Positions 24,030 to 63,659 of a stretch of DNA of 64,000 nt are shown here, one piece after another. The DNA lies in contig NC_135764.1 of the NCBI RefSeq assembly GCF_052425735.1, positions 23,932,001 through 23,996,000 of the forward strand. The letters run 5' to 3'. The position numbers and the translations under genes were made by a program. The notes under the pieces are model-generated. The model was given only the letters and a program-made list of their open reading frames with translations. It did no database searches and was not told where the DNA came from. Within the stretch, counting starts at the first letter, position 1, and each line of letters begins with the position of its first letter. The DNA comes from Oculina patagonica (taxonomy: Eukaryota).

Positions 24030-24930
24030 AATCGACAAAGAAATGGGGCGGGAATGTGAGGTAAACTGGAACACGGGAGGGGAGGGACGGGCGCCCGCGG
24101 ACACCAGAGAGGGCAGATCGAGGGGGAGCCCCGGCACAGAGAGGCCGACCGCGCCACCAGCGACGGCCCCGCCCACGGGGCGCGGAGGAGCGGCGGCCCG
24201 CCCCCCGCCCCCGGGAGCGCCTTCAATATTTTCACGTTATCTATATTGTTACTATACAAACATTTTCCAGAGTATCCACTAGATATACATTGTACTCCTT
24301 TAGCCACTTCGCTTGGACAAATCAATCAAAAGGCTTTATTCTTCTTTATGCTTTAAAAAGGTGGGTTGGTACAAGAAGATCAGGATTCATCAGCTTGAGC
24401 AATGTCATACATTTTCTGCATGGACAGACCTTAAATGTCAAAAGAATATGAAAACATAATATCATACTTCCTACTCCTTGCCTCCAGGTTTCCCTGCCTC
24501 CCCCCCCCCCCCCCCCCATATGACCCCACCCACCGAACGCACTCCCCTAATCCAATTACTACTAGTAATATATTATAAGTGTTGAATACATGTAATATAT
24601 ATGTACTGCATTTATGTGTGTGTGTGTGTGTGTGTGTGTGTAGTAACACATCAAGAGGAGAAAAAAAGTGGTATAAGAAATAGCAGAAAAAAAAATATTT
24701 TTGGTAAAAAGAGGCGAGTGAAAAAAGGGGAAAAGTTGGGAAGATAGGGGACGGAAGACCGGCTGGATCAGAGGGAATGAATGAGAAAAAAGAGAGAAAA
24801 AAAAAATAGAAAAAATTGTGGAAGGTGTGAAAAGGGAAGAAAAAGGGAAGGGAAGTAAAGAGAAGGTCCTTGAAGCAGAAAGAAGACAAAAGAAAGAGAA
24901 AGTAGAGAAGAAAGCAAAAGGGAAAAAATC
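24030..24930. repeat. Compositionally anomalous block: very GC-rich tract, poly-C, (GT)n, purine-rich low complexity
   Basis: 24070-24221 is nearly all G/C/A; C run ~24500-24517; (GT)n 24615-24641; A/G-rich 24655-24930. Confidence 0.7.
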
Positions 24931-26127
24931 AAAGTACAATGAAAGCTTGGGGAATTAGCCCTCTCCTCTCAAGTAAGCTGAATTGTTTCTTTGTTTTCGC
25001 AAATTGTAAACAACAAAGGTCGAAAATCCCGACCCTAGCTCTACATACATTGACATCGACGCCCATTTTAAATAAAACTAGCACAGTTACTAGTACCTGG
25101 CGAACGTAATTTGCTTTCCACAGAGAACGCGTCCCATGCCAAGCTCTAAGAGGCAAGCCATTGCTCTAGATACATGTATCACTACGAGTAGTGAACGAAA
25201 ACAATGATAACACAATAATTTTCTTGGCTCTAATACGACTATTAAATACCATTCTAATTCTGCAAAGAAGGAAAAAACGGCATTACAGTCCGTCTCCGCC
25301 ATCTAAAATGGTCCACAAATGTTCAAAAGGGATGCAGTTTTCTCGTGAACCAGAAATATTTCCTTTTCCTTGCAGAAAAACGCATATTTTCGTCGAGCTA
25401 TATCTGGGACTTTTTCTCGCCAAACTGTGCACACTCTAAGAAATAAAAAAAAATCACCACCGATTTATCCCAGATAAGTTTTAAATTTGCGTACCTGACT
25501 GAGCAACCCATTTCAGTGCACCGATGTTAAGAAAAATACAGGCAAGAAAAGTAAGACGAGAATATTTGCCCACGAAATATATTGACGTCTCTTTTGTATA
25601 AAACAAAACGATAAGAGGATTGTAAAACTGTTTTCTATTCTTAGAAAGCAGAGAATAAACTCGTAAATAACTTTTAGACCATAAGCTGTTCTGCCTCGAG
25701 ATTATGTTAGATTTAAATTTGTCTTGCAGCTATGGGCCAGTGTATACATTAAAGCTTTGACCGCATATTGTACTCCAGTAAAAATTAAATAAATTAAAGG
25801 GGAGCTCCGCTTTTAGGCTTGCCTAAATCTATATATTAATTCAGTGCAACTTACGAGAAATTTCGGTAGTGAGATTCTGAAATTTTCTTTCGGCTTTACC
25901 CTTGTTTAAGTTGAGTATACTAAATTTAGTTACTGCGTGAGCTGACAATCCCATCAAGCCAAAAATGATCTGCACTTCAAGATGACGACAAGATAAAATA
26001 GTTGATGTTTCTTCGCTTACAAAGTTTTATTAATTTTAATTGTAAAGTATACAACTGAGTGAGTCACATAAAAGTTTTCTTTTTTACAACAAACTGAAGA
26101 TTGCATTATTGTCGCTTTAAGCACATA

Positions 26128-29100
26128 TTAGTGAAAATGTTTCTTGTGTATTATTTTGTTTCTTTTTACGTTGTGACTGCTAATGGAAGGACCTTCTTTA
26201 ACCGGAGCTTGAACATGTCCTTGAGCTAGTGTTCCTTTCTGAGGATGGCCCTGAACATTTAATTTCCCTTGCTGTGGGAGACCCTGTACATTTGTCTTTG
26301 CCTGTGAAGGTCCTTGCACTGGCGGTTGGCCTTCCTTTTGTGCAACTTTTATTGGCATGATTTTTGGTCTGTCGGCCATTTGAACCTTTTTGGTTGGGAT
26401 TTGTGACTTCTTACAACAATTTAGTGTAAGGCAAACTCCAACACATAGCTTAGCGCAAATCGCTGGACAAGTGGTTGGAGGTCTCGTTGTCGGTATTCCA
26501 GGAGGTCCTGGTGACCCCGGTGGTCCAGCCGGTCCGGCTGGTCCGGCTGCTCCTGGGTCTCCCGGACCTCCCATGGCTCCCATGGCTCCCGAAGCCCCTT
26601 GTGTCCCTTTGGGTCCTTGAAGACCAGAAGAAGAAGAAGAATTGTAAGTAGCTTTTCAGTTAACCCAAATAGCTGCTGGGAGGTTTCATTAAATATTTTG
26701 CGACAATATTCGGAAAAAAGTCAAAGATCAAATACAACTTTGCAAAGACCGGCAAAAAGTTATTTTTATTACGTTAATTTAAGCGACAAAGTTTATTGAT
26801 ACCCTTTTGGAATGAGAAGAAAGAAGAAGAGACTGCTAACAAGGGTTGAAAATAGACTTCATCGGTTACTTTCGTTAACCCCACTGTATCTTTCTACACG
26901 ATCTTTCTCCTGAAACCTCTGAAAGCTCTACTTACCCTCTGGTCCCTGGCTACCTGGGCTACCTGCGGGAGGCCCTACAGGTGGGGGTCTTGTTGCTGGT
27001 ATTCCAGGAGGCCCTGGTGGACCCGGTGGTCCTGGAGCTCCAGCTGCTCCTTGATCACCTGGACTTCCCATTGCCCCCTGAGCCCCCATAGCTCCTTGGG
27101 GCCCTTTAGGTCCTTCAAGGCCTGAAAAACGTGCAAGAAAAAAAAAAAAACAGAAATACGGTATATCTGTATTAACGGTATTTACATGGAGAGAGAGAAT
27201 AATGCTCTGAGGGGTGGGTAATTTACCATAAACGACTAAATATAATTTAGCTTTAATCGCACCGACAAAGATCTTACCTGCCGAGCCTGGTGCGCCAGCT
27301 GGAGCCCCATAAGCTGCCGGTGTAGATGCTGGGGGTCCAGGAGGTCCCGGTGGACCTGGTGGTCCGGCTGCCCCTGCTGCTCCCCGGTCTCCCTGTTCTC
27401 CCATTGCACCCAAAGCTCCCATAGGTCCTTGCGGACCTTTAGGTCCTTCAAGACCTGTAGTAAGCGAATGAAAGATGTTTTAGTTTCTTGCTCATGATTT
27501 GATTGAAAGGACGTTTAACTAATTCGTAATGACTGTCGAAAATTTCGAATGTTTTTTTTTTCTTTTTTGTTTTTTTCAAATATCCTTCACTGCCAATAGG
27601 AATATGGGAAAGATGTTAATCCGTCAGTGACAAAAGCTACTCCGATTGTTTTTTTTTCTGGAATGCAAGCAGTTTGTCATATTTGAGCGTGGTTATTATT
27701 CAAAACTCGTCGATGTACGAAACAGTTAAAATGCGAAAATACTAGATGTCATTATTGTTGCTTGTAGACGGTGGCTCTTTAGCATGACCATTAAACAGTA
27801 AGACTGGCGTTTATTTTTCTTACAAAGGTCAACCGTACGAACAATGATCCTACCTGAAGGGCCTGGTGAACCAGCCGGAGCCGCCGGGGCTGCGGCTGGG
27901 GTTGCTGGTATTCCAGAAGGTCCCGGTGGACCTGGTGGTCCGGCTGCCCCGGCTGCTCCTGGGTCTCCCGGACTTCCCATAGATCCCATAGCACCCAAAG
28001 CTCCTTGCGGACCTTGTGGTCCTGCCAAACCTTGTGTGAAAGCAGCAAGTTTTAGCTTTAGTTACTTAAGAGGCGTACTCCAGGTGGGACTAAAAGCACA
28101 ACCAAACGACGATTCCCGTTTTTTAGTCATATGTAGTAGCCAACTTCAATGTTGCTTTTAATAAGAAATCAACTTCAACAGGTAAGATTCACGGCTGAAA
28201 TTCAACATGACAAGATTCTAAAAGACTTCTACACTTGCTGTTGTATTAAAAAGGTCTTACCTGCCGAGCCTGGTGCACCAGCCGGGGCCCCATAAGCTGC
28301 CGGTGTAGATGCTGGGGCTGCAGGGGGTCCCGGTGGGCCCGGAGGTCCTACTGGTCCGGCTGCGCCCGGATCTCCCTGTTGTCCCATGGCTCCCATAGCT
28401 CCCAAAGGTCCTTGAGAACCTGCAGGTCCTTCAAGACCTAAGAAATCGGAATTACAAAAGTTGGAAAGTTTACAAAAAAATTGTAGTGAAGTGGTGGCCG
28501 TCAAATCTGCAGCATCGTAACTAGTGTAAAGTATTGCTAAGATTCTCATTACATACGGCTGTGGCCTTTGAACGCGATATATATGTATTAAAGAATGTTT
28601 ATATTGGCAATTAAAAGCTTTTGACTCGATATTTAAAACATTCAGATGACATCCTGGTGCTCGATGCAACTCAAACATACCCATGCTCCTGTGTGATCTC
28701 CTGGCCTGGACTAGGCAATAAAACTTTAGCAGCACGCAGCACCGTCTTACAGAAAATACTGAGAGGAATTAACCTGCAATAATTTGAAGTCTTAACGTTT
28801 GTATGAGTCTAGCGTAGCAACAAGGTCTCTTACCTGATGGACCTGGTGTACCTGCCGGAGCGCCTGAGGCCGTAGCAGCTGTTGTTGCTGGAATCCCAGG
28901 GGGACCCGGAGGGCCAGGGAGTCCAACTGCTCCGGGTGCTCCCTGATCACCCGGATGTCCCATTGCTCCCATAGCTCCCATTGGACCTTGAGGCCCTTCA
29001 GGTCCTCCAAGACCTAATATGGACACATATATAATAATCAATAGCAATAAAAGCGAGTTGGGTCCGACGAGAATTTTGCACCAAAAGTGTCAAACATAAA

Positions 29101-31451
29101 GATGTCAAAGCTAAAAGAAGGTACCAAGCAGTTACTGGCTGTAAAGTCTTTTTCGATCGAAAATTAAAGAAAGAAAAAAAGAAAGAAAGTATGCGACAGT
29201 GAATTTTTAATTTCTATTTTTAAGACAATAGCTAAGTGATCAACGGTAGAGAAACGGACGTCCAAGGTTTGAATAGTAAATTAGTCACTTTAGTCAGTTG
29301 CAGTTTTGGCACTGACACAACAGCATAAGTTTTGTTTATGAGTAATAAAATAAAAATTGTTCGTTGTTCAATGTACATTAAGCTCTGTCAACAATATGGT
29401 TATCAAACATTAGATGCACGAACCCGGAATAATTAAAAAAGAACCGCCGAGATCCCAAAGGATGTCTAGCCCAGGACCCTTTGCACACCTATCAGATGCT
29501 ATAAGATACTGAGACAAATATGACAACGACAAATATATGTATTGCCTCCTCCTTAAGTCTCAAATAGGCGAATGCATTATTGTATATTTCTTATAATAAT
29601 CTGGAAACACTAAGATATTGATATCAGTAATCGACTTTGATCTTAATCCTGGTAAACACTTCCAGCTAATCCTTGCAGGATGTCCTACTTTTGCATTTAA
29701 AGTGATTTATTTTATGCCGACATCACGGTGACGTACCTGCAGGCCCAGGTGCCCCAGCTTCGGCACCATAAGCGGGGGCTGCAGTAGCTGGTACTCCCGG
29801 AGGTCCCGGTGGGCCAGGTAGACCCGGTTGTCCGGCAGCTCCTTGGTCTCCTTGACTTCCGGGTGCTCCCATAGCTCCCATAGGCCCGTCTGGTCCACTC
29901 GGTCCTGCTTGCCCTTAATTCAACCACAAAAAAATAAACACATTACTCTGAAAAATAAAAATACTTGCTCACTCGCGCTCTAAATACTAACAAAGAGGAA
30001 GTAAGTTGTATAACGATTCAATTACATTTAAATTATGACAAAGATTGGTATAGTTATAAAGAAAGGAAGTTCAAGCCTCTCCCGAGCCAAAGAACTATTT
30101 GGGTTGAGCTTTAACAGTAACTATCGTTTCTTTAGCATTTGGATTTGGCGCTCATCATTTTTTTTTCGTATTGTTTTCGTATCAAAGTGAGCCCTAATTA
30201 TTTTCTTAATCGGCTACCCATTTGAAATCTACTTATTTTTTATGATTTTACAACTGAAGCGTCAAATGTATTATGGTCGGCATAAATCTCCAGCATGAAA
30301 TTCGCCTTTGTCGTATGAGATGAAATAAATATCTTTGAAGTTGTGAACCCTCTCTCCTCTTCTGTCCTTGCGCGTAACTGTGTTATCCCCCCTTTCACGC
30401 ATCACCAAATCAAGTGAATTTCCTTAAAATTTCCTCTCCCCCCTCCCCCTTTCCCTTGGTCGATAAATAATGACCTGTCCTTTAAACAAGAACAAATGGA
30501 GATGTCTAACATTATCTCGATGATTAATCATCATGAACTCACCCGAAGGTCCTGGTACACCAGTCCTTGAGGAGCAACAAGTGCTCGGGCAAGTGCTAAC
30601 ACAGATTGTCTCACAAATCTCAGGGCATGATGGTAAAGATGCAGTGCCTGGTACTCCGGGAAGCCCCGGTGGGCCCGGGGGTCCTGGTAAACCTGCAGGC
30701 CCGGAATCGCCTTGGCTGCCAGGTTCCCCCATGGTTCCTGGGGACCCGTTATCTCCACTAGGTCCTTTCATTCCTGGTGAAAGCAAAACATGCTTTGTGA
30801 ATTTTACGTCACATACTTCCTGCTTAATAATGCATATGATGATGACCATCATGATGATGATCAGACTTTAAAGTTACCTCTAGATTTTGACCGTTAGCCC
30901 CTAAAATCTTATTATACATGCTGCTTTATTTTCTCGTGACGACGATCTGGCTGCGTGAATGAAAATTCATTGTATTCACATCGAGAAACTTAATTGCATT
31001 TTAACTTGGTCAGCATTACAGTTCTAAAATAAACCCATAGTTCCCGGGTATAGTGATTTCTGGTGTGGACATTGTTACATGACCTTTTAGCTACACCATG
31101 TTTTATTTTCCATAACAAATCGTTAATAGCAACCTTAATGTTTTAGTCTTTTGGTAAGAGAATGTGTGCCAGAAGCAACTCTGCCTCCGAACTCTCTTAA
31201 ATTCAAACCCTAATAACGCCGATACCCATGATAATGATGATGATGATGATGACGACGACGACGACAAAAAGGTCAATCAATCAATCAATCAATCAAACTT
31301 TATTTATCGAGGGTAGCGCGTTATAGTTTGTCAACCAATAAATTTGTGGCCCTCTTAAATGTTCTAAAAGTTAAAAATCTACTAAAAACAATAATCTAAT
31401 TTAAAATCTAGTCGACGACGTCGACGACAATGACGACGACGACAACGATCG

Positions 31452-31508
<57 letters not shown>

Positions 31509-33793
31509 CAAATTGAAAAAATGCAACTTGAGTTTACCTGGTGGTCCTGGTAGAGCTGGCGGTCCGGGAGGTCCCGGAAGACCGAGTGGTCCCATATCCC
31601 CGGGTTCCCCTAAATTGCCGGGTTGTCCAGGTATTCCGGAAGGTCCTGAAGTACCTTTAAAGAAAAGGAAACATGTAAGCTTGCAAATGTATTCATCCAT
31701 AAGACGCTAACGCTACCAAAGAAGAATTTTCCGGAATAAAATTTCAAAGCGATCTCTGGTTAAAAATTAATAGAATAAACGATCTTTCGACTACAAGTCT
31801 GTAGTCTTTGGAAAGGGTACAAACTGGTAGTCGAAAACTCGTTTATCTCTTAATTTTTAACCAGAGATCGCTTTTTATTTAATTTTTTTACAGTAACATG
31901 AAAAAAATTATAATGAATTAAAACAAAACGAAAAGTTACTGAAAATGAAAATATTTCGTTTCTGGATGCCATAGAATTGATTTGGTTTGTAAAGGACGAA
32001 AATAACAGCAGTTTCCAAATAGACTAGCATTCAACTTTGATACAATTGTCCTAAAGATTTTCAGTTATAATCAAAAAATGTTAGTTTACTACGGGATCAT
32101 GCCCTTTATTAAAAACTGGCTTTTTAAGGGCAAGTGGATTGGTTATAAAAAAGGCCTGTTTCATCAGTGGTCAGTTTTGATCCGAACAAATGGGTTTAGT
32201 TTATAAGACAATACGGTTTGTTTTAGAGCTCATTTTGAAATAATCAAAGTGAAATTGTCTTTTCTTTTTTCACTCGTTCTGGTAACATCTTAATTGCCCG
32301 TACCTCAACATGGTGAGAAAGGTTCGTGTCTTGATGTAAAGTTTAAAAGGTTGAGCGAGTAGATGTATCAAACGTCTCTTTATAGCAACGTTTTTTACGA
32401 AATACTTTTACAAAAAAATTCTTAAGCGCTGAGCGTTTAAATTTTTAAGTTTAAATTCATCTTCCTGTAACTAAGAGAAATCGAAATCCACATTTTCCCT
32501 AGGGAGCATGCCCCCGAATCCGCCCTCTTAGTTGGCTCACGCTTCCGCTTTGGAATTTAAGCTACCCACTCAAATTCTTCCTGCGCGTTCCCTGCAAATA
32601 CACTAGTCTGTGGGTAAACCAGTCAAAACGCTACCTTCCAAGGTATCAAATTAAACTTAAGGCCACTTAGTTTAGTAAATCTTGAACTGTCTTAAAAACG
32701 TAGATTTTCTAACTGTTTTCGTCTTCTCAGACGGTAAACCGTTGTCGTCTGCGTAATTTTTTACGCCTATAGTAATATCTGTTAGAATACGTACCAGGGG
32801 GACCTGCCATGCTGCCGGGAGGTCCGGGAAGTCCTGGGGGGCCTTGCAGTCCTGGAGGCCCTGGTATTCCCTTTGGTCCATCCGGTCCCGGAGGTCCGGC
32901 CGGGCCGACCGGACCGTCAGGCCCTGGGGGCCCGGGTTGCGGAGGAGGAGGCGGTGGTGGAGCAGGCTGCGTGTAGTATGAATTATAGCTACAGCAACCG
33001 GGGTAACATTCGGGATAACAGTATTGTGGGCAGTCGTTACCACATGTATAGTCTTCACGTTTAAAGTCTGCAATTAACAAAAGAGTAATTACTCAATTAA
33101 TTTTAGTTTCAATGTGTGATCAACATCTAATTTAGAAATTTTATTAAACTTTAGTTAACAGGCAACAAGTACATGTACTAATTCATCAATATACGGAATA
33201 AGGCTTTAATATGTCACTATAATGTGCGAGACCTGAGATCAAAGAAATGTACAGTGATAAGTAAAAAGACTTTCTAGATTCTGAGGTAGGATTGAAAGCG
33301 TTAAATGGGGCACGGGTCATAGAGCAACGACTTCTACGTTGTGCTTTAGTCAAAAGAAATAGACATTAGATTAACCGCACAACACAAGATAACCACAATC
33401 CTTTGCTGCATCGGAATACCAGGTTAAGTTCTTTTTATTTCGGAGATCATCACCCGGTCTTCTAAGTCTTGACACCATAATAAAATGTGGATAATCTTTG
33501 CAATTTACCTCAATGATGGTCGCAGGAGAAGCTAAGTACAAAGAGTGTAATGCTAATATTTTACGATTTTTAGTATCTTCTATATAATTATCCACTTTGT
33601 TCTTTCCCAAAACGCTGGGAGAAAAAAAAAAGGCTTTACAACTTCTTACACGAAAGGCAATGGAACGGCGCGGCAGTAGAATATGACATATTTTAATCTC
33701 ACCTTCTTTAAGCGCCAAGCCACCAGCAGCAGATAAATTAACTATCAACCATGTTCCCAGAAAATAAATCAATGACCAATATTTCCAATCCAT
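26128..33793 (-). CDS. Extended minicollagen-like nematocyst protein, ~757 aa; exons 33793-33703, 33067-32795, 31654-31538, 30773-30543, 29913-29737, 29013-28834, 28437-28261, 28030-27854, 27454-27278, 27121-26936, 26615-26128
   Basis: Signal peptide [25 protein letters not shown] propeptide site, N-terminal [21 protein letters not shown], polyproline, repeated Gly-X-Y blocks, internal [22 protein letters not shown]-terminal [22 protein letters not shown]; all introns phase 1 GT-AG; last acceptor position uncertain. Confidence 0.9.
31420..31509. repeat. (GAT/GAC)n microsatellite in a minicollagen intron
   Basis: Long perfect gat run; a related run and (TCAA)n at 31228-31295. Confidence 0.95.
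31748..31873. repeat. ~125-bp hairpin (MITE-like)
   Basis: aagcgatctctggttaaaaatta...taatttttaaccagagatcgctt with inner tcgactac/gtagtcga pairing. Confidence 0.75.
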
Positions 33794-36690
33794 ATTTTGA
33801 TGGTTGCTCTGGGAAAAAAAATACAAGAATTGTAAGTATATTGAGTGTCACCTAGGAAATGACGCCGCGTTTTTGGACTGATAGCTGAGATCTGCAAAAT
33901 TATTAACTGATAGCTGAGAAATCACCGAAAGTTTAAAATTTAGGTGATTGCATAAAATTACTCAAAAAAGTATCATGGGGCCAAGGTTTTTCTTGGAATA
34001 ACTTTTCACTGAAAAAAAATTGGTTCGGATAGTAGCGACCTTTCTTACAATATAAACACAGGTAAAGTGTCTGATACGACTGCCGTAATTAATAAAGCAG
34101 GGAAAATTGTAGTCTGACTAGCATGGGGGCTTTAGTCTTCAATAGCGTATTACAAAAGAGCATATAATAATGAAGGTAATAACCTGAATAAGAAAGTGCC
34201 GGGAAAATTCTGGCCTAAATCCATCGGAATTGAGTATTAAGGACGGCCTTTGGCTAACAGCCTTGTTTAAATTTTGTTGTGAATTCCTGAGACAAAGTGG
34301 GAGCTGAAATGTTTTCATAACCTTATATGCTAAGGGATAAACCTCTAATACACAATTGAAAAACATATGCAAAAATATTTGATTATTAAGATCAATAAAA
34401 TGCACATACTTTGTTCCGAAATATTTTCGCGCATCCACTAGACTCGGCGAATTTCAATCCTTCTTCTCAAACCTTTTTCACCGAAAATTCACTTCGTCGA
34501 CTTGTTGAGTTTTTTGTTTGAAACTTCAACCTTTTAATATTTAACAATTGGCAGGTTATGTCCTTTTGTACAACGAGAAACATAAATAGTTCTTCTGTTT
34601 GTCTTATTCAGGTACCATAACAGGTAGCTGAATCGTAAACTTCTCCCTACCTATTTCCTTTACATTTTACAAGTTTATGTTTAGAGAACTCAGTGATTGA
34701 TCACAATAATTTTTTGGCGAGGTCATCCCATTTCTTCGCATTGCTAATTACTTGACTCTTAGACTGGAAGATTAAAGAGAAAGTGGATTTTGATCTAAAC
34801 TGTTCTCTTTTAAAAAGCTTCTTTCAAGACATAACTCCGTCAAGATTACGTTTTAAAATATGAAAACATCAAGTCGTATTTTTTGTTTGCGCTGAAACCG
34901 AAGTTTTATTAGCAGTTGCCAATGTTGTTTTAGTCCCTTCAGACGAAGTCTTTCTCGCAGGATGTCACAACAGCTGGATAACGAGGGGAAATGGGGAGCA
35001 GCTACAAGGCGGGCAAACTCAAATTTTTGTAATTTTGACAAGTTCAACTACCTGCTTGCATTTGTGTCTCTAATGAAAACACCACTATTTTGGCGTTATA
35101 TTTAGCTGTCTGGACGAAAAAGGTACTAAGCTAATAAAGCTTGTGAAACTACTGTCCCCACTGCTGTGATTGAAATAAAAACGTGATCAAGAAGAGACAT
35201 TACCCTTAATACAACTCCGAGGGACCGATATTAAATGCTATGGACTTTCATATTTACTACTCAAGATTACTTTTAAGCAATATATTGCAAAGCAATCTTC
35301 AAGATCTCTTCTGGAGCAGAACAGAGAATTTAAAAACCTTAAAAAGCGCTGCAGACTCTGCGTTTTCCCCGACAACCTAAAACATAGCGATTTTTTTTTT
35401 TGAAAAACGTAAATCTAGTTAGGTATAAGTATACAAGTGTTCTAATGCAAATGCTGAAATGTGATTGGCTGTGCTATCGTACAATATCAGCCACAAGTGT
35501 GCAGTGGTTGAAAAGTCGTCTACAAAATGGTGACGTTTTCTCGTTTCTCTGAAGTTTCAGGGGACGTAAAGAAACATTAATGGATAATTTAATTCCTGAG
35601 AAAGCTAAAAGAAGGGCAGTCATCGTTATATTTAGGCGACTTAAAAAATTGGAAATTATTGACCAACCTGATGAGCAGTTGTAAAAAGCTGACAGTGTGA
35701 AATAATAATTTATTTTGCGAGCGATTTTGATTTCGCTTGAAGTTTTATGTCTTTTAAAATATAGTTGAATAATTGGAAGGAATTGAAGGAAATTTAGTTA
35801 AAATTCTACTTAAACAATTAAATTATTTGCCCTCGATTCCTATGAGGTGATAGTTGATTCGGCCTTCAACCTCATCAAGTATCGCCCCATAGAAATCTCA
35901 AGCTCATCAATATCTAATTGTAAATTATTACGGTGGATTCCGTGCGTGGGTTCGCAACCAAAATAAGTTTAATTCGGCGAGTTCACTTGTTGTCTTTTTG
36001 ATCTTTCGGCGGGTTTCTTTCTTAAGCAAATTATGGCTACAGTAGACAATTTCCGTTGATGTATTTAAGCACACTTTTTTAATTTTCTAATTAACACCAC
36101 GCCACGCTTAATGCAAGAAGTACATCTTAAAAGTAATATCCTAGTGAGTAGGTTTTATGATGCATGCGGCGTTTGCAAAACAGCAAATGGCTTTATCCAT
36201 TTTTAATTTCAAAAAAGGCTTTCTTTTGACCGCACGCGATAACAAGGTTTTGGCACAAAACTGTACCAAATGAAAAATAAATGGTCGATTTAGATACGTT
36301 TGGATACAAACCCAATTTATCACAAACCCGACCTGGACCACTAAAACAAAGATCTATCGATGGCATGTTCTTTTCTTTTTTTCAAGAGCAAAATAAATAG
36401 CGACTAATGTAATTCCCTGGAGTGCCCATTCGAGGCATAAGTCGGAACTGAACAAATCTGAGATTACAGCAATACCGACAAATTTTGTGCCCTGATATTG
36501 TTTGATTATGATAATTATGTTATTTTTTTATCTGAAATAGTGGCAAAGAAAGGGGACGTGATATAGTCAGCGCACTTTATGTTTCCTGTACATCCAAGGA
36601 ACGGAGATTTTTTCGGTTTGTTTTTCCCGGAGGAGTTGGTTTTACAAACGTTGGTGAGATTGTTCGAATTGTGTTTCAAATTTTACATCT

Positions 36691-39600: not shown

Positions 39601-42600
39601 TTAGCGCCCATTTAGTCCGCTCGCAGTAGCGCAATAATCAGTAACTAAACAAATTAGACTGTCCCATATTTTATTCCTCCCTTTCCTCAAGCATTTAATT
39701 TACCTTAAGACTGTCAAACTCTTATCCCAATAATAGTTCTATTAATTTAGATAATTTACCAATTACAAAATGTTTGATAATTTATTTGTCTTGAAGACTT
39801 TAACGACATTTATCAATCAGAGTATTATATCATCAACACTGAACCTTGCAACCATCCATCCGTCCGTTCGTCCGTCCATCAATCTATCCATTCATCAATT
39901 TATTCAATGGTCCTTCCATCCATCCATTTGTTGATCCGCACTTCTATCTTTCCTCCAATTCATCCATCCATTCATGACTGTTACGAGAAAACCATTTTGA
40001 CGAGAAAGGAGTTCCTAACGAAACCTCTAATATGTTTTACTATTCAGGTTTAGACGGCGGAGACATCTTGTGCAAAATACAAAAACACTCCTTTCAAGGA
40101 AGAGAATTATCAGTGAACCCAGACGAAACAGTTTCCCTAAATTGCTCTGTTGTCCAAGGAAAACCAGCAAGGCAGATCAGATGGTCCAAAGAAGGCGATA
40201 ATACGAACGGTCAGCGGCTACTCAACGTTTCATCTTTCTCAATGCCAGGTCTCTGGACGAGTTTACGATTAAACAATGTCAGCGTTGAGGAATCTGGAAC
40301 ATACAAGTGTGAGGTGAAGAAAGAAACGCAAAGGGATGTTTGCAAAGTAGTTCTTCATGTCTATTGTAAGTTGGAAGTGTTCGATTTTTCCGCACCAAAC
40401 TTTTGATAGGATGCTTCCTTTGAATATCTCAAGTAAATAGCAAGCTCCGCTGAAAATTTGTCTCTGTAAAGCTTGCGAAAATTTATTAAGAACGAAATTA
40501 TTAAATTTGTCAACTTCAGCAGAGTCCGTAAGACCCAGATTGACAGGGGCACGGGCATGCAGCAAGTCAGTTTTGGAAGTTTCGCCGCCATAAGAAAATG
40601 ATAAGAATAAAGTCTAGTTTTTTGAGATGGAGCAGCTCGACATAGTGGCTTTGGAAGGTCTCTGTGTTATTTTTGTCTAAGTACTTTTTAGAGTAAAGTG
40701 GCTATTTTATTCTATGTTAATTCTTTAATTACGTTACTTTCCATCTCATTAAGCCCGCCCACGTATTTTGAAAACGAAGGGATTCTTTACTACAACACCA
40801 CAGTTCCTGACTGAAGGACGTAATCCTGTTTTCCATTGTTACGCCAGTGGCTGGCCGAAGCCTTCCTTTGCATGGCGTAAAGACGGAAAGGAGATTAATG
40901 ATGGCGATGCCTTGAACTCGTACGTGCTAACAAAAAGAGCCTTCGGCCTAAATGCAGGCCTGGACTTAGATATTCTCTACGTCAGACAGGAACATGCTGG
41001 GCGATACAGTTGTGTTGCAAAAAACGTGTTTGGCGAGCAACAGCACAACATTAATCTCTTCATAAAAAGTAAGCATCCAGCTTTTTTGTAGCCCCATTCC
41101 GCTTTGTGGATTGCAAATAGCCCGCAAAACAAGTACAAATGATAAGTAAATAAACCCTTTTAAGCGGCTGGTATATTGGACGATAATGTCCGATGCTGTA
41201 AGATTGTCGAAAAATGAACAATTGACGAGAAGCGAAGCTTCGAGGGCAACTGTGAAATTTCGAGAACAATCTTTCAGCCAAGGGCATTATCCTACAATAA
41301 ACCAACGGCGTCCACGTCCACGGCACGCACTAAATAGGTACTAGAGAACTTCAAGTCCTCAGGGGTTTCGCTAGGCTATTTTAGGTTTTCTGCCTGTTTC
41401 GCCAAGCGGGGTTTATTTATTTTATAACACTCCGATTAATTTTCACAACGCGCTTTATCGCCTGTAAATTTATAGGAAAAACGTATTTAATAAACTCGGC
41501 GTAACTGTGGTTGAAACAAATGTAAGTTGATTGATTTACGTTTTTTTAACTCTGTAATTTCATTAAAAGTTAAAATTGAATAAGGTGACTTCATTCATTG
41601 GTTTTTTGTGCTTGCCTACAAAATCGGGCGACGTATATTAAATCGGACGGGGAATATTCGCTCATACCCGCCGTTCGATTTTGTACCACGTGATACGTTT
41701 TGTCCAATGAGCGAGGGCAAAAGTTAATTAGGGGGTTATAACTTACGATATACAGCTATTTCAGTTACCGTTGTCCGGATCAAAGCTAAAAGACAAGACT
41801 GAAAGGCAGTATGGGTAGAAGAAGAGAGCAACTGCGCGTGCTGAATACTAAAATATATAGTGACACGACAAACGCGTCAGACATGTGAAACAAGGTGCTT
41901 TTAGCCACACTGAATTTAAAAAGACTTTTCAAATGTCAGAGCTAAGCGATAGTGAAAGTAAAGCTACAGAAAGGCCTCCTGAAAAGGAAAACAAACTCGT
42001 GAATTCTCCACGTGCGAAATACAAATTTGTGCATTTAATGAAGCTTATATGCAAATTTGTAGTGAATACCCAGAACGCCATACGGTCTTGCCATTTAGCT
42101 TTAAGCTTTGACCCGACAACGTTTATTGAAATAGCTGTATGTTCTTCACAACATTGTTTAAAAAGGTCCCATATAGTCCTCCCTATTACACCACACCGCG
42201 CGATAGATTTACAAAACGGTACAAAGTCAACATTTCAGAAAAAAAGAATAGGTTGTGCTGTACATTAATTATTTTTTACTCGTCATTTGTACCATGACCC
42301 GCCCTACGGGTTCATAAAATATATCAGGCTCGTGAAAACATACAGCGAAAATACACACGGAAATGTTTACTGGGAAGACATAAATCTTGCCCTTAAAACA
42401 TTTCGTACTCTTTTTATTCTACCATTCAGGAAAACATCCAGGAAAACCTCCAAAAGTCTACCCATACGCGTCTGTCAATCAAGTGACCATCCAAAGAAGA
42501 GAGGACGCTCGACTGACGTGCGTAGGAGAAAACACTCCAAACATAGATACGGTTGTTTCTTGGGTGTTCAATGGAAAGTCCCTGCCGCTGGACAAAAACA

Positions 42601-44934
42601 AAGATTCTCATCATGTGTCAGACTTCGTGTATTTTCAAGAGCAGGACACGCTTAAAGTCAACTTCTCTCTCCTTATAAGGAATGTGACGGAGCGTGATAC
42701 TGGGGCTTATCACTGCGGGGTTCATACTCTCAAAGGAAACGACTCAGACACGATTTACCTCAGCCTTTTTCAGCCAGGTACGTGCATGTTCATACAGTGC
42801 ACGTGTATTCATGTAATAGCGGGAAAAAAAAGCTTTTATGCCTTTCCTCTTTCACCCTTCAATGTTTAGCCCGTGTGTGAAGCCCAATAAGTAAGGGAAA
42901 AATTTTCTTTCATCTTTGCGCCAAGAAATATAGCACTGCAAGTTGAAAGGCGTTGATGCGCCAAGTCAGGAGCGTCTCGTGAGAGGCACCGCCGCCAAAA
43001 CGAAGCTCTCGCGGCGAAATTCCACGAGCTGCTCAGGCTAAGTAGGCACTGGTTCTAATTTGTGTAACACGTTGCCACAACGATACGTTCAGAAATACTC
43101 GATCGGTCATCCTTTAACGGTTCAGTGTTCTTCACTTTTTGTGCGGAAACGTCCACGGCACGCACTATATAGGTACAAGAGAACTTCAAGTCCTCGGGGG
43201 TTTCGCTAGGCTATTTTAGGTTTTCTGCCTGTCTCGCCAAGTTATGCGGTCGTAAGTTTGTGCGACCCTCTTCCTATGACAAATCTTGCCGAACATAGTG
43301 AGTGGTTATATAGTTACATTCGTAGTAAAAATGGTTTTCAATATTCTATGATCGACTCTTAATAAAAATGAAGAATTAAAAGTGCATAACTTTGATTTAT
43401 ATTATGGCTTCTGTCTGCTCCAGGTTCTAAACAGGTTAAGCGCAAGGCCTCCTTAACAGAGATCCTGCTCGTGGGTGCAGGGATCTTTTGCGGTCTGGTA
43501 ACAGCTGCTGTTGCTCACCGACAATGGAGCAGGAGACGAAGACATTGGAAACGCAAGTTGCTAAGTTACCGTCTTGTTATTTTTTTGTGCCCGCCTATTG
43601 GGTTTCTGGTTTTTAAGCTTGTTCCGTCAAGATAGTTGGGTATTGGCAAAGTTTTCTTTGGCCAGGCCAATATTTATTAAATGTGACAAAAACACTATTA
43701 TCTCTCTCGAGACACATCAACAGCGGCCAATCCCGAGCGGGCAAGATAGGGTCAACTTGCCCACTTGGGTAGCCAATCACGGCACAGGGTTTGGTTCATA
43801 ATGCCCGCCAGCGGGCAACAAAAAAAACGAAAAACACAAGAACGAAGAAGATAGTAAGGAAGTTAAACGCAAACTTCGTCTTACTGAAACAAAATAAGTT
43901 GGTTAGGGACCGTAGTAAAGAACGCACAGGCGAGTGACGTACAGCTGAGAAGTTCGGGAGTAAGGGGACGCAAATAGAGACCGATCGTTCTGAATTAGTA
44001 TGATGATACACCAAGACAATATTCACAAGTTGACAACTTTAAATGGCACTAATCTGGTAGGAAACTCGTAAATAATCATTCTTGGAATTACAAACGATGA
44101 AAACATTTCAAAAGTGAATTATATACCTTAAATATGCAATAATTTCGTTACCTCCTGCCCCAGCGCTTTTATTTAATTTAACCCATCAACCCCCCCCCCC
44201 CCCCGCCCCCATCCATTTATGGACACCCCAACCCACCCACCACCAAAAGCAAAGACACATTATAAACAATTAGTTACTCGTCTGCGTTATCGGCCTATCT
44301 TTTACTATTACTATTACGTTTACTATTACAAACACCTCCTCCCATTAAGGGGTTTCATACATTGTTATTCTCCTTAGTTCTTTTTCTTTTCTTTTTCTTA
44401 TTTTTCTTGTTGCTTTTTTTAGATGACTTACAATCAAAAGAGTTCCAGTACGACGTTTTTATTAGCTTTAGCAGCCTCGACTACAACTGGGTACGAGACA
44501 ATCTCACTCCGGTGCTGGAAAGAAAACGAATCAACTATTGCATCCACAGCCGGGACTTTATAGTTGGGAAAGCAATCATCGAAAATATTGCAGATAGCGT
44601 CTACAACAGCAGAAAGGTGCTGGCAATTATTTCACACAGTTATCTTGCGAGCAACTTTTGTCGTGAGGAATTGGAAATCGCTTTGTACCGCTGTACAGAA
44701 ATGGCGGACTCGTCTCTGCTGCTAATTCGAATCGATGACGTTGACAAGAAGAGACTTCCCAAACCGTTAAGAAGACGTACGTTTTTGGATTATTCAAGTG
44801 CCTCAGAGAGAATAGACTGGGAGCAAAGATTGTTAAGGCATATCAAGTTTGATGACAAAGAATCGAGATTAGGACCCAGCATTTCTACCGATAAAGTTCA
44901 ACTCATAAGTGAATCCAACTTAAAGTGTGTTTGA
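36691..44934 (+). CDS. IL-1-receptor-like protein: signal peptide, 3 Ig domains, TM, TIR; ~560 aa; exons 36691-36751, 40048-40365, 40754-41068, 42430-42777, 43424-43552, 44423-44934
   Basis: MAFSFNRFILCGAALCSLCNG signal; Ig1 LNC..IRWSK..ESGTYKC; Ig2 FHC..FAWRKDG..HAGRYSC; Ig3 LTC..VSWVFNG..DTGAYHC; TM ILLVGAGIFCGLVTAAVA followed by RRRR; TIR YDVFISFS..CIHSRDFIVG..SRKVLAIIS..FCREEL; all introns phase 1 and in frame; exon-5 donor ambiguous (GC at 43553 or GT at 43565). Confidence 0.9.
37840..38580 (+). mobile_element. Crypton-like non-autonomous remnant with terminal hairpin, in receptor intron 1
   Basis: ORF 38150-38368 EELDKSVEDQKGINTSRSTQFALRTWQAWL resembles the N-terminus of Crypton/KCTD1-like tyrosine-recombinase proteins; hairpin 38384-38547; related remnants near 35440-35900 and 39420-39500. 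Confidence 0.5.
41314..43241 (+). repeat. 93-bp direct repeat pair (41314-41406 and 43149-43241) flanking the Ig3 exon
   Basis: acgtccacggcacgcacta.ataggtac.agagaacttcaagtcctc.ggggtttcgctaggctattttaggttttctgcctgt.tcgccaag occurs twice with few mismatches. Confidence 0.9.
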
Positions 44935-46063: not shown

Positions 46064-48638
46064 CTAGTACTTGCGTCTTCGTCTGGCCAAGACTCTAAAT
46101 GTACAACGTCTATCTTGATTGTTTGTGTTGATAATTAAAGATAAGTTTTCATCACAGTTGCTAGAAACGCCTAGGTACATTGCTGTATTAGTAGCCGTAT
46201 ATTTATATTTTAGATGCTTTCCAACTTTTTCTTCCTCAAACAGGAAGGCATCACCAGTTGCCCTGTCGCATTGTTGCTGTTCCTGTAAATGAAATTAAAC
46301 AAAACATCCTTTCAATAAACAACTAATGTAAATAAACTTTGTCTTATCGGGCCAATTGTTGTTGGTTGCCAACGATAAAAAGAAAAACTCCCACAAATTG
46401 TTCTGAACTTTTTCAGCTAAGATTTTCTAACGGGAGAGCTTACAAATACGATCAACCACCGTCTTGCCTTCCTGGTCTTCTATCAACCCAAAATTCCCTT
46501 GTGTTTGTGCATTGATTTGTCCTACATTTTAACCCATCGATTCACTTCATAAACGTTAACTAAAAATTTTTACCTAAAAAGAATGTTTCGTGCCAACTTG
46601 GGCTAATTTATCTCACCTCAAAAGCTATTGTCGTTCCGTTGATGACCTTCAGGGCATATTTGGTGCCATCTTGTTCATCGGTGTATTGAATGCACTTTCT
46701 TCCACTGTTTTCCACAATCATAAATCCTTTGATAAATAAAATGCACTTAACGTCGACATGATTAACTACAGTAACTCTATGGAGTATACTAACTACAAAA
46801 ATCACTAAACGAACAGAGCGAACCACATGAGCTACAAGAAGCACAGGAATGCTTTCGTGATATAAAGTACAGAAGTCACAGAAATAAACAGACTATTGAG
46901 ACTCACAAACTACATAACTACATTGAACAATTAACAAATTGACATCAGTTTTTTTTTTCTTCTTCTTCTTCTTCTTTTTTTTTTTTTGTCTGTCCTGTTA
47001 TCGATGATAAACTAGTTTGTCATAACATCTTCATAATTAGTTGCAATAGATCCATGCGAGTGGATCTACAACAAACTTTGACAATGTAATGACAAAATTT
47101 AGAGTCACCAACTGGACAGACGCATGAAAACCGATGTCAATTTGCTTTTTACAATAACAAAAAGCCAAAACTGAAGGAATGAAATGCACGAGTCCAATTG
47201 TGGAAGATGTAATTGCCGAATCGCGGCAGGATCTTTTTTTTTTTTTTTTTTTTGTCGCTGTAATTCAGCGAATCATAGGTTCGTAAATCAAACGTTTGGA
47301 AGAATACGGCCAGATATATAAGGGAAAATCTATTTTATTCAGTGTAAAGTGTTCACAAAATAATCCGCTAAAACGCAGTTCAGGCGTTATAATTCTCGCC
47401 TTATCAAGAATGCAGCGCTTAATCAGTGCTGAAAAATTTGACCTTCGCTGATCGCGTCAGTTACGAGATTCATCCGCCTGTCCTCTTATCGACAAAAAAT
47501 GGCCAATCAGCGCGCAAGGATTCGCTCAGTTATTGTAAAAAATGAGTTCGAAGGACATGGAAAAATGAAACTACGTCAAGTTAACCAAATGCATCAACTA
47601 CAAATACACGAAGGTCGTGATCTTCGAATTTGCAAGCTTCATAATCAAAAGCTAATACTAATATTGATAAGCACTGTGAATAGCTTTTTACGTAAAGAAG
47701 AGTCCATGGCACTTGTTTCCAACTTTTGGATAATAAATGAAGTTGGTTAAGTTGGTAAGATTTGTGTAGAGATCCTGTGATTTTTGAATAACTACACTTC
47801 TTAGGTAATGTATATTTTTCGGTCGAAGATAAAATCTAAGATAACTTCAGGAATTGCTATACCAATCCTATATGATAATTCCTCGGCTGCAAAAGCATTA
47901 GCCTTCGAACAAATCACATTTTACCGTTACTTACTCGCTTTAGGGTCTCTGGTAGACGACCCATTGCATTTTGCTGTACACTGCCGCTTCCCAGCTGAAG
48001 AAACTTTACATTGGCTGGTATCGATCTTTATAAGATTGCCGCCGCTGCAGGGTTTGTTTTGTCTAAAACGTGAACGGAGACTCTTGCTGCTTGATCCGAC
48101 TTGTACGTGAGTTAGGAGCGATGCGACTAGCGTCTAGGAAGAAAAAAAAAAGTAACTGAAATTGAAAGGGCGTCGTTTATAGACCAAATCACTTTATGTT
48201 AACGCCCCAGTGTTGCTAACAGAGACAAATTTGTTTGACGTTTAACTGCCCTGAGTGGTTTACCTTCGCAGTACTGGTTGTCTTGAACAGATAAAAATTT
48301 CAAGGAACATTACTTTTCGTAAAATGTGGCTTGTAACAAAAGAAACAGGTACATCCTACCTAGGCAGAATCAGAGTAAATTTTCGAAAATTAAATTAAAG
48401 GTGAATCGAGAAGAGCAGTTAAAAACACACATTGCAATGTATTTTAACTCTACTAACATTAAATTCCGCATTAAAAAAAACCAAGGTAACCATGTTAAAT
48501 ATACAATTGGTGTGGGCCATGTTAGGTAATAAAGATAAAAAGGAATAAAACTTCATAAGGTCAAAAAATGGATTACACGAACATAAAAAGATATTAAAGG
48601 TTGTTGTTACTTACTAGAAAAATACGGGTTAAATCCAT
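46064..48638 (-). CDS. Secreted beta-trefoil (FGF/IL-1-like) protein, copy B3, intact, 183 aa; exons 48638-48615, 48133-47935, 46726-46617, 46282-46064
   Basis: GT-AG, phases 0/1/0, 552 nt open: MDLTRIFLTLVASLLTHVQVGSSSKSLRSRFRQNKPCSGGNLIKIDTSQCKVSSAGKRQCTAKCNGSSTRDPKARFMIVENSGRKCIQYTDEQDGTKYALKVINGTTIAFEEQQQCDRATGDAFLFEEEKVGKHLKYKYTATNTAMYLGVSSNCDENLSLIINTNNQDRRCTFRVLARRRRKY. Confidence 0.85.
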
Positions 48639-55267: not shown

Positions 55268-58200
55268 TCATTTTCGTTTGAGTTTTTTATACGAACAACG
55301 CCTATCCAGCTTATTTGTCCTTATAAGGGATAAATTTTCATCACAGTTTCTAGGTAGGCACAATTGCATTGTCCCGTTAATATTTCTATGTTTATATTGA
55401 TAAAGTTTTCCAACTCTCTCTTCGACAAACAGGAAACTGTTTTCAGTTGTACTGTCGCATTGGTGCACCTGTAAAAGCAAAGGAAGCAAACAACAATATT
55501 AATTCCATGAAAATCGGAAACAGAAGCTTTCATTATTAGGGAACATTATAACTTGACTAGTCGGTTACCTATACACCGATTTCACAAATGGCGGACGCGC
55601 GGAAAAAACTGGTACGAGGCATGAAAACGAGGCGTTTTAGGATAAACAACTTTCGTGTTACAAGGGGAGAAGTGAAAATTACAGGAGTTTTGAAGCTAGC
55701 CTCCGTTGAATGAGGGTATTAGCTCGTTTTCTAGGTTGATTTAATTTCGAGATTACCGAGTTCGAAATAAGTTCGCGGCCAAATATCTTGTTTTGTTTCT
55801 GGTTGTAAGCAAAACCCTGAGTTTCACATGGCTTGAAATACGGTGGGTCGCCAACGATTTTAAACCTAGGACTTATATCAAGAAAGCTCCGGTATCCAGA
55901 CGAGTGTACACATTTTCTTAAGGATTTTGGTAAGTCATTGAAGAATTACTAAAATAAACACGCAATTGTCTGTGTAAACATACATGTGCGTTGTGAAAAA
56001 ATGTGTAACAATGGATTTTCGGGCCGGTTTCTTTATATTTTGTCTGGTAAAATAATCATACGTGATACCATAAGTACCTGAAAGCATCAATAAAAATGTG
56101 TTATTCTCAATCGACTTAGTAGTTTTTTTTTTGGACTTAGTAGGCTAGTAGATTCTTGCATTTTAGAAAAAAAAAATTGTATTCAAATAATTCAGACAGA
56201 CTAAAGCGGCTAATTCGATTAAACATAAAACATCACTTGGCTCCACGCAAACCAAAGGAGTTACATCAAGTGAAGCGGACAGTAAATGTTCAACACAATC
56301 TTCAGTGGACAAGATCATCACAATGTTCCTCAAGTCAAAACAATGCTATTAATTCTGTAAATTTAGTGAAATCTGTGGAATTCCTTCTGCTGTGTCGGAC
56401 GACTGAAGTTGTTTGATCTCGGGAAGAAATTAATCACGTGCTAGGCAACCACGACGAAATCCAACTGATAGAACAAATATTCACGGTTTCGCTTCATTTT
56501 ACAAGCTTTTACAGGACACCGTGAGTGAAGATGCCCTCCGTTTTAATTTATATAAAGCTGAGATTATTAGAAGCGATTTTTATTCATTTATCAAGTATTC
56601 TCAAATATAAGGATTTATTACAAGAAGAAACATACATATCATACCACTGGAATTCAATACCGGTAGTCTTGGGCTTCGTCTGTTAAATTTATATTACAGT
56701 ATTTGTCAACATTTTAACGATTTGCCATAGCACAGCAAAGGTGTTTTGCGAAGTATAAAAATAATTAAATAGCGAGAGAATAGTAGTAATTTGTTTAAAG
56801 GAAATGTGACCGGTCAAGGTGGCTCAAAGTTGAATGTTGACTTGTCAAGTTCCCATTCAAAGCCAGAGTTCGTGCTCTACTAAATCCGCAAGGAGACAGA
56901 GTTAGAATTGTTTGCTTTCACAAAAGTAAAAAGAACATACCTTGACAGCGTCTGGAAAAGAACGTACCTTGACAGAGTTTGAAAATTAATTTCAATATCG
57001 TTCCGTGTAAATTTTTACCGGCCAACAGCCGTCGAAGCTCCTTATTGGAAAACCAAAACTTTAACTCTGTTTCCCTGCAGATCTACGGTCCCTTTCTTCT
57101 TGCAACACAGAAACAAGAATAACTACCAGACTGTAAACTCGTTTAGAATTCCGTAATCTCGAAAACCTGGAAGGAAAACGGTCTATTTCCCCGTTTAACA
57201 AACAAAAACTTCAGAACTCGCGTATTTTTCACTTTTCCCCTTGTAACACGAAAGCTGTTTATCCTAAAAAGCCTCGTTTTCATGCCTCGTACCAGTTTTT
57301 TTCCGCGCGTCCGCCATTTGTGAAATCGGTGTATTAATATGACAAAAAAAAAATGAATTATTTTGTAAGAGTTTTTAAGTGTCTTGCAATTTTGAAATTA
57401 AGTAGATTTGCACATAAATGACCTTCGGCCGACTTCACATGATTTTGGTCGGCTTGTGATTGTTGTTTATTTAACTCACCTCAAAGGTGACATTCGTCCC
57501 ATTGATGACTTTCAGTGCATACTTGGTAGCGTCTTGATCGTCAGTGAATTGAATGCACTTTCTTCCTCGTATTTTAACAAACGAAAATTCTGTAAACAAA
57601 ATATATTCAGGACTTGTCACGGTTGAAGTTTTTTTGTCGACTGGGCAAGCACATCAGCAATTATGGATATTTATAATATAGGCATAGTACTCATTGATTC
57701 ATTTCAAACTCATTCATCACTCAATTATTTATTTAATCCACGTTTATTCGTACTCAACATTTCGAACAATGAATTTCATCGCAAAATAAAATAGCAAACA
57801 ACTTTCCCTGTGTCGAAAACGCCAAAACCGTTGTTCTAAGAGAAAATTAGTTAGTGAAATAGCAAAAGAGGCAATTTTACCAGCGGTCGGAAAAGTATTC
57901 CTCCCGTATGACATTTTTTAACATTTCCGTTGAATGTTATACACTTACTGATCCATTGAAGCCCAATATGGCAAAATACTTAAGTGGACACTTCAATATT
58001 GGAAGAGGCCTAAATTCAAGGGCAATATTAAAAGTGGAGACTTCAAAAAGCATATTCTTTGCCATATTGAACGAGGACATATATATTATGGATGTTTTAC
58101 TGTATCGAAGAAATAATCTATAAATAAGCGTTGAATCCATCAAAGCAATAGGGGAATGAATATAAGAACCTTTCACATGTCGTAAGGTGTCAATGTGTTT

Positions 58201-59241
58201 ATACCGCGAGTATGTTATGATAATAACTCTTTTCCTTTGTAATAATATGCTTTGCTCCGCCCGGTAAATACCGTTAAAGCTCACAGAGGTGGGATATTTG
58301 TAATTTTTTTTATACAGCAACGCACTGGACGAGTATATACAGTACTCATCCTAAGTAGCCAGAACCCTTCTCAAAAAAATAAATTTGCGTCAGCAATGCG
58401 CGTAAGAGATCGTAGTTCAATTCGCATGGAGAAGTTTACGTAGCTTGCCGTCTAATATAATTATGTTGTCTTAAAATGTTGCAAAATCATGATTAGGCAG
58501 ACACGTGACGCTTATGCAGGCATTTGATTAAATGATTATTTGTGAGGGTATTAGTACATATAACGAAACTTCAGGTTTCTTTTCTCTTGTAACTTTTAAA
58601 GTTTTGTCATAATATGGAAGACATGCGCGTAATCTAAGACAATTATTAGGAAGTCTATACCGATCTCTAACAAGAGTTGGAACATCGTTGCAAATGATTT
58701 TTATCTGCTTCTACCCTTGTATATCTATTTCTTTAATTCTTTCTACACCTCTGCGATAATCTGCTACTCTGTTCTTTTAATGACAATAATCATTTCTGAT
58801 CACTGTAAACTCCTTGATTGCAAATCTACAACAACCAAGTACTTTAAAAAGCACACTCGTAAAAACAACTTATTTCATTTTACTTACTCGTTTTAGGGTC
58901 TCTGGTAGATGAGCCATTGGATTTAGCTTTACACTGCCGCCTCCCAGCTGGAGATATTTCACATTGGTTGGTGTCAATCCTTATAAGACTACCTCCAATG
59001 CAGGGTTTGTTGTGTCTGAATTGTGAGCGGAGGCTCCAGAGCTTAGGTGTCGACTTACGCCAGCTTGATCCTACTTCCACACAAGCCAGCAAATACGCTA
59101 TGACAATCTGATGGTAAACGTATAGAAAAAATAAACTGTTTTAAAATATAATTTGAAGAACATTTGTGTAATTAAAACTATAAAGTCCGTTTTTAAAACT
59201 GCAGTAGTTCAACGAACTTTTAAAAGACTTGATAAATCCAT
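55268..59241 (-). CDS. Secreted beta-trefoil (FGF/IL-1-like) protein, copy A3, intact, 184 aa; exons 59241-59218, 59107-58888, 57589-57480, 55468-55268
   Basis: GT-AG, same exon sizes as A2 (24/220/110/201): MDLSSLLKIVIAYLLACVEVGSSWRKSTPKLWSLRSQF...DPKTKFSFVKIRGRKCIQFTDDQDATKYALKVINGTNVTFEVHQCDSTTENSFLFVEERVG...DRRCSYKKLKRK. Confidence 0.85.
55573..57332. mobile_element. 1.76-kb non-autonomous DNA transposon with ~120-bp TIRs and AT target duplication, in intron 3 of A3
   Basis: AT|acaccgatttcacaaatggcggacgcgcgg...ccgcgcgtccgccatttgtgaaatcggtgt|AT; empty site ttaATag in A2 at ~17761-17767. Confidence 0.9.
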
Positions 59242-63635: not shown

Positions 63636-63659
63636 TAGAAAAATACGGGCTAAATCCAT
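63636..63659 (-). pseudogene. Copy B4: promoter and exon 1 only (MDLARIFL|gtaag)
   Basis: Exon 1 and TATA conserved; ~100-150 nt into intron 1 the sequence joins what is B-type 3' flank (63480-63500 matches 11960-11990), so exons 2-4 are deleted. Confidence 0.8.

Follow-up and report, generated by a model that had tools for sequence, protein, structure and literature searches.

To which of the beta-trefoil families does a protein belong when its sequence matches none of them? The question is raised by a small gene, here called gene A, in a stretch of 64,000 nucleotides from the genome of the stony coral Oculina patagonica (NCBI RefSeq assembly GCF_052425735.1, contig NC_135764.1, positions 23,932,001 to 23,996,000 of the forward strand; hereafter the window). 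A first-pass annotation, made from the letters of the window, had read the product of gene A and its relatives as intermediates between FGF and IL-1 in both sequence and intron pattern. Our analysis revealed that gene A is a member of an unnamed, tandemly expanded family of ~160-residue secreted-type proteins, for which a beta-trefoil fold is predicted and in which the two introns within the trefoil are placed as in the FGF genes of the same coral. On balance, and with modest confidence, we favour the explanation that the family is a branch of the FGF-type cytokine trefoils that is strongly diverged, reinforced by disulfides and restricted to corals, its members probably being matrix-tethered extracellular ligands.

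Gene A and its family

Gene A is a real, spliced and transcribed gene. The same four-exon model (Table 1) was reached by the independent NCBI annotation pipeline, the product being identical to P0051, 'uncharacterized protein LOC144660529 [Oculina patagonica]', and a 238-nt contig of sequencing run X1 joins position 46725 to 47934, the junction of exons 2 and 3. Runs X3, X5 and X6 were rejected as expression evidence; their contigs are DNA-like, come from a related strain, cover the introns and carry indels. All of the peptides quoted in the first-pass annotation were recovered on the minus strand within 46064-48638, and the intron phases it had given, 1 after DPKA and 0 after AFE, were borne out by the exon model. 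Its remark that the genes are invisible to simple open-reading-frame calling was fair for exons of only 24-219 nt, yet the gene had been annotated by the NCBI pipeline.

Alignment of the full-length members revealed a hydrophobic N-terminus, an S-L-R-S-x-F-R..C..GGNL motif and a K/R-rich tail past the last strand as features common to them. The eight Cys residues of the gene A protein (C37, C50, C60, C64, C86, C116, C154 and C171) occupy conserved columns, with an extra Cys at position 147 in many members, and the sequons at N65, N104 and N157 are conserved as well. The signal-type N-terminus, N-glycan sequons, eight Cys and basic tails that had been listed for these proteins were therefore all found; of the two tails cited, RRRRKY is that of gene A and KKLKRK belongs to paralogs g3 and g5. 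From these sequences we infer that the family proteins are secreted via a signal peptide.

When 1.8 billion representative proteins were searched, and in two word-indexed searches, the trefoil family alone came back as true matches; the long repetitive matches P0020, P0031, P0038 and P0039 were unrelated SLH, HYR or Ig proteins and were discarded as false positives. The named relatives come from Oculina, Orbicella faveolata, Desmophyllum pertusum and three Pocillopora species, robust stony corals only, and all are annotated 'uncharacterized' or 'hypothetical'. Several orthologues were found with unbroken reading frames on ~1-kb Logan contigs, which must be transcripts since the genes carry introns. 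The family is undescribed in the literature searched. SCRiPs, the small cysteine-rich proteins of corals, were considered as an identity and rejected, being much shorter and not trefoils. Within the 529-Mb genome, an exon-4 profile gave 19 matches and hence at least 19 copies, 14 of which lie within 144 kb (C7:23.886-24.030 Mb) as a pair of arrays that converge on the window centre, with eight copies on the plus strand followed by six on the minus.

Predicted fold and intron layout

We regard as certain the prediction that the mature protein is a 12-strand beta-trefoil. A first AlphaFold2 (AF2) model, from an 18-row alignment, was poor, with a predicted local distance difference test score (pLDDT) of 58 and no resolved structure for the last third of the chain; the model used here, from a 60-row alignment, has a pLDDT of 75.7, a predicted template-modelling score (pTM) of 0.75 and twelve strands. 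The AlphaFold DB model of a Pocillopora member, which is independent of ours and represents a fold cluster of its own, superposes on the AF2 model at a template-modelling (TM) score of 0.81. The check that had been suggested for the fold, AlphaFold followed by Foldseek, thus came out in favour of a trefoil, every match in every structure library searched being a beta-trefoil.

The same comparisons were less selective as to the kind of trefoil. With Foldseek against the PDB, HA33, IL-1beta, FGF1/2 and Symfoil were matched at E values of 2e-3 to 7e-3, and the TM score by target was highest for FGF2 (0.70); against the Swiss-Prot models IL-1beta, IL-36, IL-37 and IL-18 topped the list (E 1e-3 to 5e-3), with hisactophilin and FGF1 at similar E. 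The Z scores of VIA-align, in which rows less than 1 Z apart are ties, were 14.4 for CBM13, 14.1 for ThreeFoil, 13.8 for both Symfoil and FGF1, 13.5 for fascin, 12.6 for FGF10, 12.5 for IL-33, 12.2 for FGF4 and 12.0 for IL-1beta. Because the top rows are ties, the superfamily is not assignable from structure. A shape search of the ESM Atlas returned bacterial ricin-type modules. The nearest feature clusters of that atlas were cnidarian FGF-domain clusters (0.88 and 0.87, the line of the tool being 0.9), and percent identity in the structural alignments peaked with FGF1-derived chains (15-20%); these two results lean weakly toward FGF.

The discriminating evidence on origin is gene structure, which proved informative. 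Exon 3 of gene A corresponds in the AF2 model to exactly strands 4-7 (residues 76-81, 84-90, 97-102 and 107-112), flanked by a phase-1 intron within codon R75, directly after DPKA, and a phase-0 intron after AFE111. In Oculina, Desmophyllum and Orbicella this central exon measures 110 nt, against 116 nt in Pocillopora; it always runs from phase 1 to phase 0. For comparison, four canonical FGF genes were worked out in the Oculina genome. In the FGF8/18-like gene (C2:21.22 Mb, with orthologue P0077 as the guide), a phase-1 intron interrupts the Ala codon preceding KLVIES, the central exon is 107 nt long and a phase-0 intron follows LIGRK; in the other three, introns of phase 1 and then phase 0 flank a central exon of 104 nt. 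The region C2:21.20-21.41 Mb contains a cluster of at least five canonical FGF genes, their central exons being 104 or 107 nt long, again with phases 1 then 0. Two internal core introns are described as ancestral to FGF genes (PMC11733497).

As controls from the same genome, ricin-B domains were either single-exon or broken near profile positions 38 and 87 of 126, and fascin trefoils were mostly single-exon. The layout is common to the family and FGF, and is not shared by the further trefoil families of this genome that were compared. By a rough estimate, agreement of two introns in strand position and phase, and of the central exon in length to within 1-4 codons, would arise by chance with a probability of ~1e-3 or less. 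The earlier claim that the introns fall as in FGF1/2 and IL1B held for FGF, as evidenced by the four coral genes with the same phases; for IL1B it may hold as well.

Origin of the family

The family most likely stems from the trefoil lineage of FGF type (the FGF/IL-1 'cytokine' trefoils), in the simplest case from a duplicated FGF gene, which would have retained the two ancestral core introns (the phase-1 intron ahead of strand 4, the phase-0 intron behind strand 7) and a near-identical central exon size while its sequence diverged past recognition by hidden Markov models (HMMs) and extra disulfides were gained. The product would be an extracellular candidate ligand, tethered to sulfated glycans or matrix through the K/R tail and binding a cell-surface receptor. 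The likeness to FGF comprises the predicted 12-strand fold, the putative signal peptide, core introns that agree in strand boundary and phase, a central exon of 110 nt in the family versus 104-107 nt in the coral FGF genes, and cnidarian FGF clusters as the nearest protein-language-model neighbours; a K/R-rich C-tail, which is long in the coral FGF8/18-like protein, adds weak support. The basic tail is suggestive of binding to heparan sulfate and FGF receptors. Should this descent be right, the family would be a clear case of intron position and phase keeping a signal of ancestry once sequence similarity is gone, with a bearing on the long-standing question of the relationship between FGF and IL-1 among the trefoil cytokines. 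An orphan, tandemly expanded coral family lacking a Pfam entry thereby yields candidate extracellular ligands that can be put to the test.

Several findings weigh against an FGF origin. PF00167 recognises at least 29 FGF exons across the genome but none within the trefoil cluster, and the profile gave no match on the family in Pfam searches at E<=10, for which both single exons and 11 full-length or near full-length members were used (g1, g2 and g3 entered the protein-level comparisons as single exons). Alignment of the 60-row family alignment with a coral FGF alignment by hhalign gave a probability of 0.6% and a P of 0.095 in local mode, the global mode being meaningless. The single local alignment pairs FLFEEE..YKY..MYLGV with CVFYEK..YTEF..WTIAV of FGF strands 8-10, the register to be expected; in it the FGF strand-8 Cys of C-x-F-x-E, whose absence the first-pass annotation had pointed out correctly, is replaced by Phe (F-L-F-E-E). 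The family further differs from FGF in its 8-9 conserved Cys, in a strand 1-3 region that is ~20 residues longer, and in forming a large tandem array confined to robust stony corals. The same Pfam searches gave no IL1, ricin or lectin match, and a family profile run against all PDB sequences picked up neither an FGF nor an IL-1 chain at E<=10. Noise in the Pfam output (GerQ, IL7, DUF7042 and similar, E about 0.1) was discarded, as was a chance match to Dot1 (E 0.27) in the PDB search. The by-eye alignments to FGF2 and IL-1beta from which the FGF/IL-1 reading had set out were hence without statistical support.

The intron argument has its own limits, in that the proposed equivalence rests on the strands of a predicted model and on the strand positions of FGF2, not on a residue-level superposition. 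The exon lengths of IL1B presumably also give phase 1 then 0. If IL-1 genes do share these positions, the introns cannot separate FGF from IL-1 ancestry, and would support the FGF/IL-1 cytokine lineage generally rather than FGF alone. Intron phasing in the IL-1 trefoil is described as conserved, without numbers in the text (PMC13736523).

It is conceivable, albeit unlikely, that the family consists of secreted ricin-B/CBM13-like lectins or defence effectors, directed at carbohydrates of microbes, symbionts or prey and expanded through immune or venom diversification, not in the service of signalling. The beta-trefoil fold is shared with ricin-B/CBM13 proteins. A best structural match to ricin or fascin, which had been named beforehand as speaking against an FGF/IL-1 relation, was, read literally, half borne out: CBM13 is first by Z, but its difference from FGF1 is below 1 and formally a tie. 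The full-length members gave no HMM match to ricin or lectin domains, the family alignment contains neither QxW nor a detectable internal three-fold sequence repeat, and PF00652, which finds 15 exons in the genome, finds none in the cluster. The gene structure is likewise unlike that of the ricin-type domains of this coral. The ratio of nonsynonymous to synonymous substitution (dN/dS) between pairs of window paralogs was 0.24-0.37, and therefore the family proteins are under constraint; these values show purifying selection and no overall diversifying selection.

Somewhat less likely again is a lineage-specific trefoil that arose independently, or whose divergence is too great for assignment, with a function outside signalling, for example as a nematocyst, matrix or toxin component, and with the intron match to FGF being coincidental. 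It would agree with the failure of every sequence method to link the proteins to a family, with the separate fold cluster in the AlphaFold DB, with a minicollagen-like gene that lies between the two arrays, and with the repeated origin that has been argued for the trefoil fold (discussion in PMC5861070). Coincidence is made difficult by the joint match in strand position, phase and exon length, given the chance estimated above, and by the absence of this layout from the other trefoil families of the coral, ricin-B and fascin.

The position of gene A next to a gene encoding three Ig domains, a transmembrane segment and a TIR domain raised a further explanation, namely that the family consists of IL-1-like cytokines signalling via this neighbour, as a coral-specific secreted IL-1/IL-1R-type module. 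The receptor-like gene lies between the two trefoil arrays, its end 1.1 kb from that of gene A, and the chromosome carries a paralog of it with an Ig3-like exon (C7:24598608-24602011) at a distance of 40 kb from a further family locus, C7:24.64 Mb. The IL-1 proteins also head the Swiss-Prot list of Foldseek at scores comparable with those of other trefoils. Invertebrate IL-1anc genes, those of cnidarians included, are reported to encode leaderless proteins that combine a PDZ domain with a trefoil whose strand 9 carries the F/LES motif; TRAF3, GCC2, SOX3 and ESD are their neighbours, and linkage to IL-1R homologues is usual (PMC13736523).

These hallmarks are missing from the family. The motif F/L-E-S is absent from every aligned member, strand 9 reading LKYKY or LYQYKH; Pfam found no PDZ domain, the mature protein being a trefoil alone; and many disulfides and a classical signal peptide are predicted. 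Since the signal peptide is present and both PDZ and F/LES are lacking, the family does not belong to the IL-1anc lineage. TRAF3, GCC2, SOX3 and ESD were not recognised among the window genes, no specific search having been made. PF00340 gave no match in the family proteins, and a genome scan with it gave only two sub-threshold matches, both on another chromosome. These are near-identical, score 24 and 23 bits, contain a string resembling the IL-1 signature (F-T-S-A..W-H-I-Y-T) and lie at C8:29741141-29741299 and C8:29991623-29991769; they were rejected as an IL-1 gene, being purine-rich, without a plausible splice acceptor and inside a segmental duplication. As for the neighbourhood, about 35 IL-1R-like TIR exons occur in the genome, including a ~22-copy array at C12:7.77-8.28 Mb, so that some proximity is expected, and in Pocillopora, Desmophyllum and Orbicella the sequence up to 10 kb from the family genes is free of TIR and Ig exons. 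A complex predicted between the mature gene A protein and the neighbour's three Ig exons scored 0.00 and counts neither way. An IL-1-like family is accordingly very improbable.

The adjacency itself is suggestive. Least probable of the readings given here, though worth stating, is that the trefoils are the missing secreted ligands of the cnidarian three-Ig/transmembrane/TIR receptors, descended from FGF, recruited to TIR signalling and co-located with a receptor. Stony corals would then have arrived on their own at an IL-1-like ligand-receptor module, separately from the IL-1anc lineage of PDZ-trefoil proteins, and the adjacency offers a concrete and cheap binding experiment for receptors without known ligands. 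With regard to the FGF/IL-1 relation as first proposed, secreted-type trefoils with FGF-type introns stood up to analysis, whereas sequence similarity did not, and nothing places the family between FGF and IL-1 as an intermediate.

Paralogs and other features of the window

The product of gene A was used in a tblastn search of the window, which located four further copies (Table 1). Paralog g5 is intact and its product is identical to P0049 (LOC144659304); g3 is apparently intact. The closest copy to gene A is the pseudogene-like g2 (72% identity in exon 4). The remaining copy, g1, is probably decaying: besides the deletion in exon 1, its first conserved Cys is changed to Arg and one extra A puts the basic tail out of frame. 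Two orphan copies of the 24-nt first exon are probably remnants of array rearrangement.

Table 1. Positions in the window of gene A, its paralogs and the adjoining receptor-like gene.
Feature	Position	Strand	Description
Gene A	46064-48638	minus	four exons, GT-AG introns; 552-nt reading frame encoding 183 aa
Gene A exon 1	48615-48638	minus	ATG + 8 codons (MDLTRIFL), start of the putative signal peptide; donor GTAAGT, phase 0
Gene A exon 2	47935-48133	minus	remaining putative signal peptide, SLRSxFR..C..GGNL motif, predicted strands 1-3; 4 Cys and NGS sequon; phase-1 donor after DPKA
Gene A exon 3	46617-46726	minus	110 nt, phase 1 to phase 0; predicted trefoil strands 4-7
Gene A exon 4	46064-46282	minus	predicted strands 8-12 (FLFEEE, MYLGVSS, NCDENLSLI, DRRC), tail RRRRKY, stop
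GGNLIKID	48020-48043	minus	peptide of gene A
STRDPKA	47936-47956	minus	peptide of gene A
AFLFEEE	46229-46249	minus	peptide of gene A
MYLGVSS	46160-46180	minus	peptide of gene A
QDRRCTF	46097-46117	minus	peptide of gene A
RRRRKY	46067-46084	minus	peptide of gene A, basic tail
Paralog g5	55268-59241	minus	exons 59218-59241, 58888-59107, 57480-57589, 55268-55468; tail KKLKRK
Paralog g3	15916-18068	plus	exons 15916-15939, 16038-16257, 17517-17626, 17868-18068; tail KKLKRK
Paralog g2	9202-11654	plus	exon 2 frameshift near 9520-9540; exon 3 donor AT not GT
Paralog g1	2109-4966	plus	7-nt deletion in exon 1 (2109-2125)
Orphan exon-1 copy	22232-22255	plus	MDLTRIFL and GTAAGG donor; no downstream family exons
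Orphan exon-1 copy	63636-63659	minus	MDLARIFL
IL-1-receptor-like gene	39978-44934	plus	converges on gene A
Three Ig exons	within 39978-40403, 40753-41088, 42384-42866	plus	IL-1-receptor-like gene
Transmembrane exon	within 43396-43632	plus	IL-1-receptor-like gene
TIR exon	44266-44934	plus	IL-1-receptor-like gene

The minicollagen-like gene placed between the converging arrays was recognised from open reading frames of collagen triplets with Cys-rich and Pro-rich ends at 26128-33826 on the minus strand, which fit a multi-exon gene. The window as a whole is AT-rich animal DNA with a GC content of 34-46%. At 46942-46999, 47012-47617 and 47223-47263, intron 2 of gene A contains (CTT)n and poly-T tracts as well as a segment which, at 10-40x the flanking depth in the DNA-like runs, is a dispersed repeat or transposon fragment. 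A (CA)n-type microsatellite at 24431-24939, which reads as a His-Thr repeat in one frame, lies within a pyrimidine-rich stretch of low complexity.

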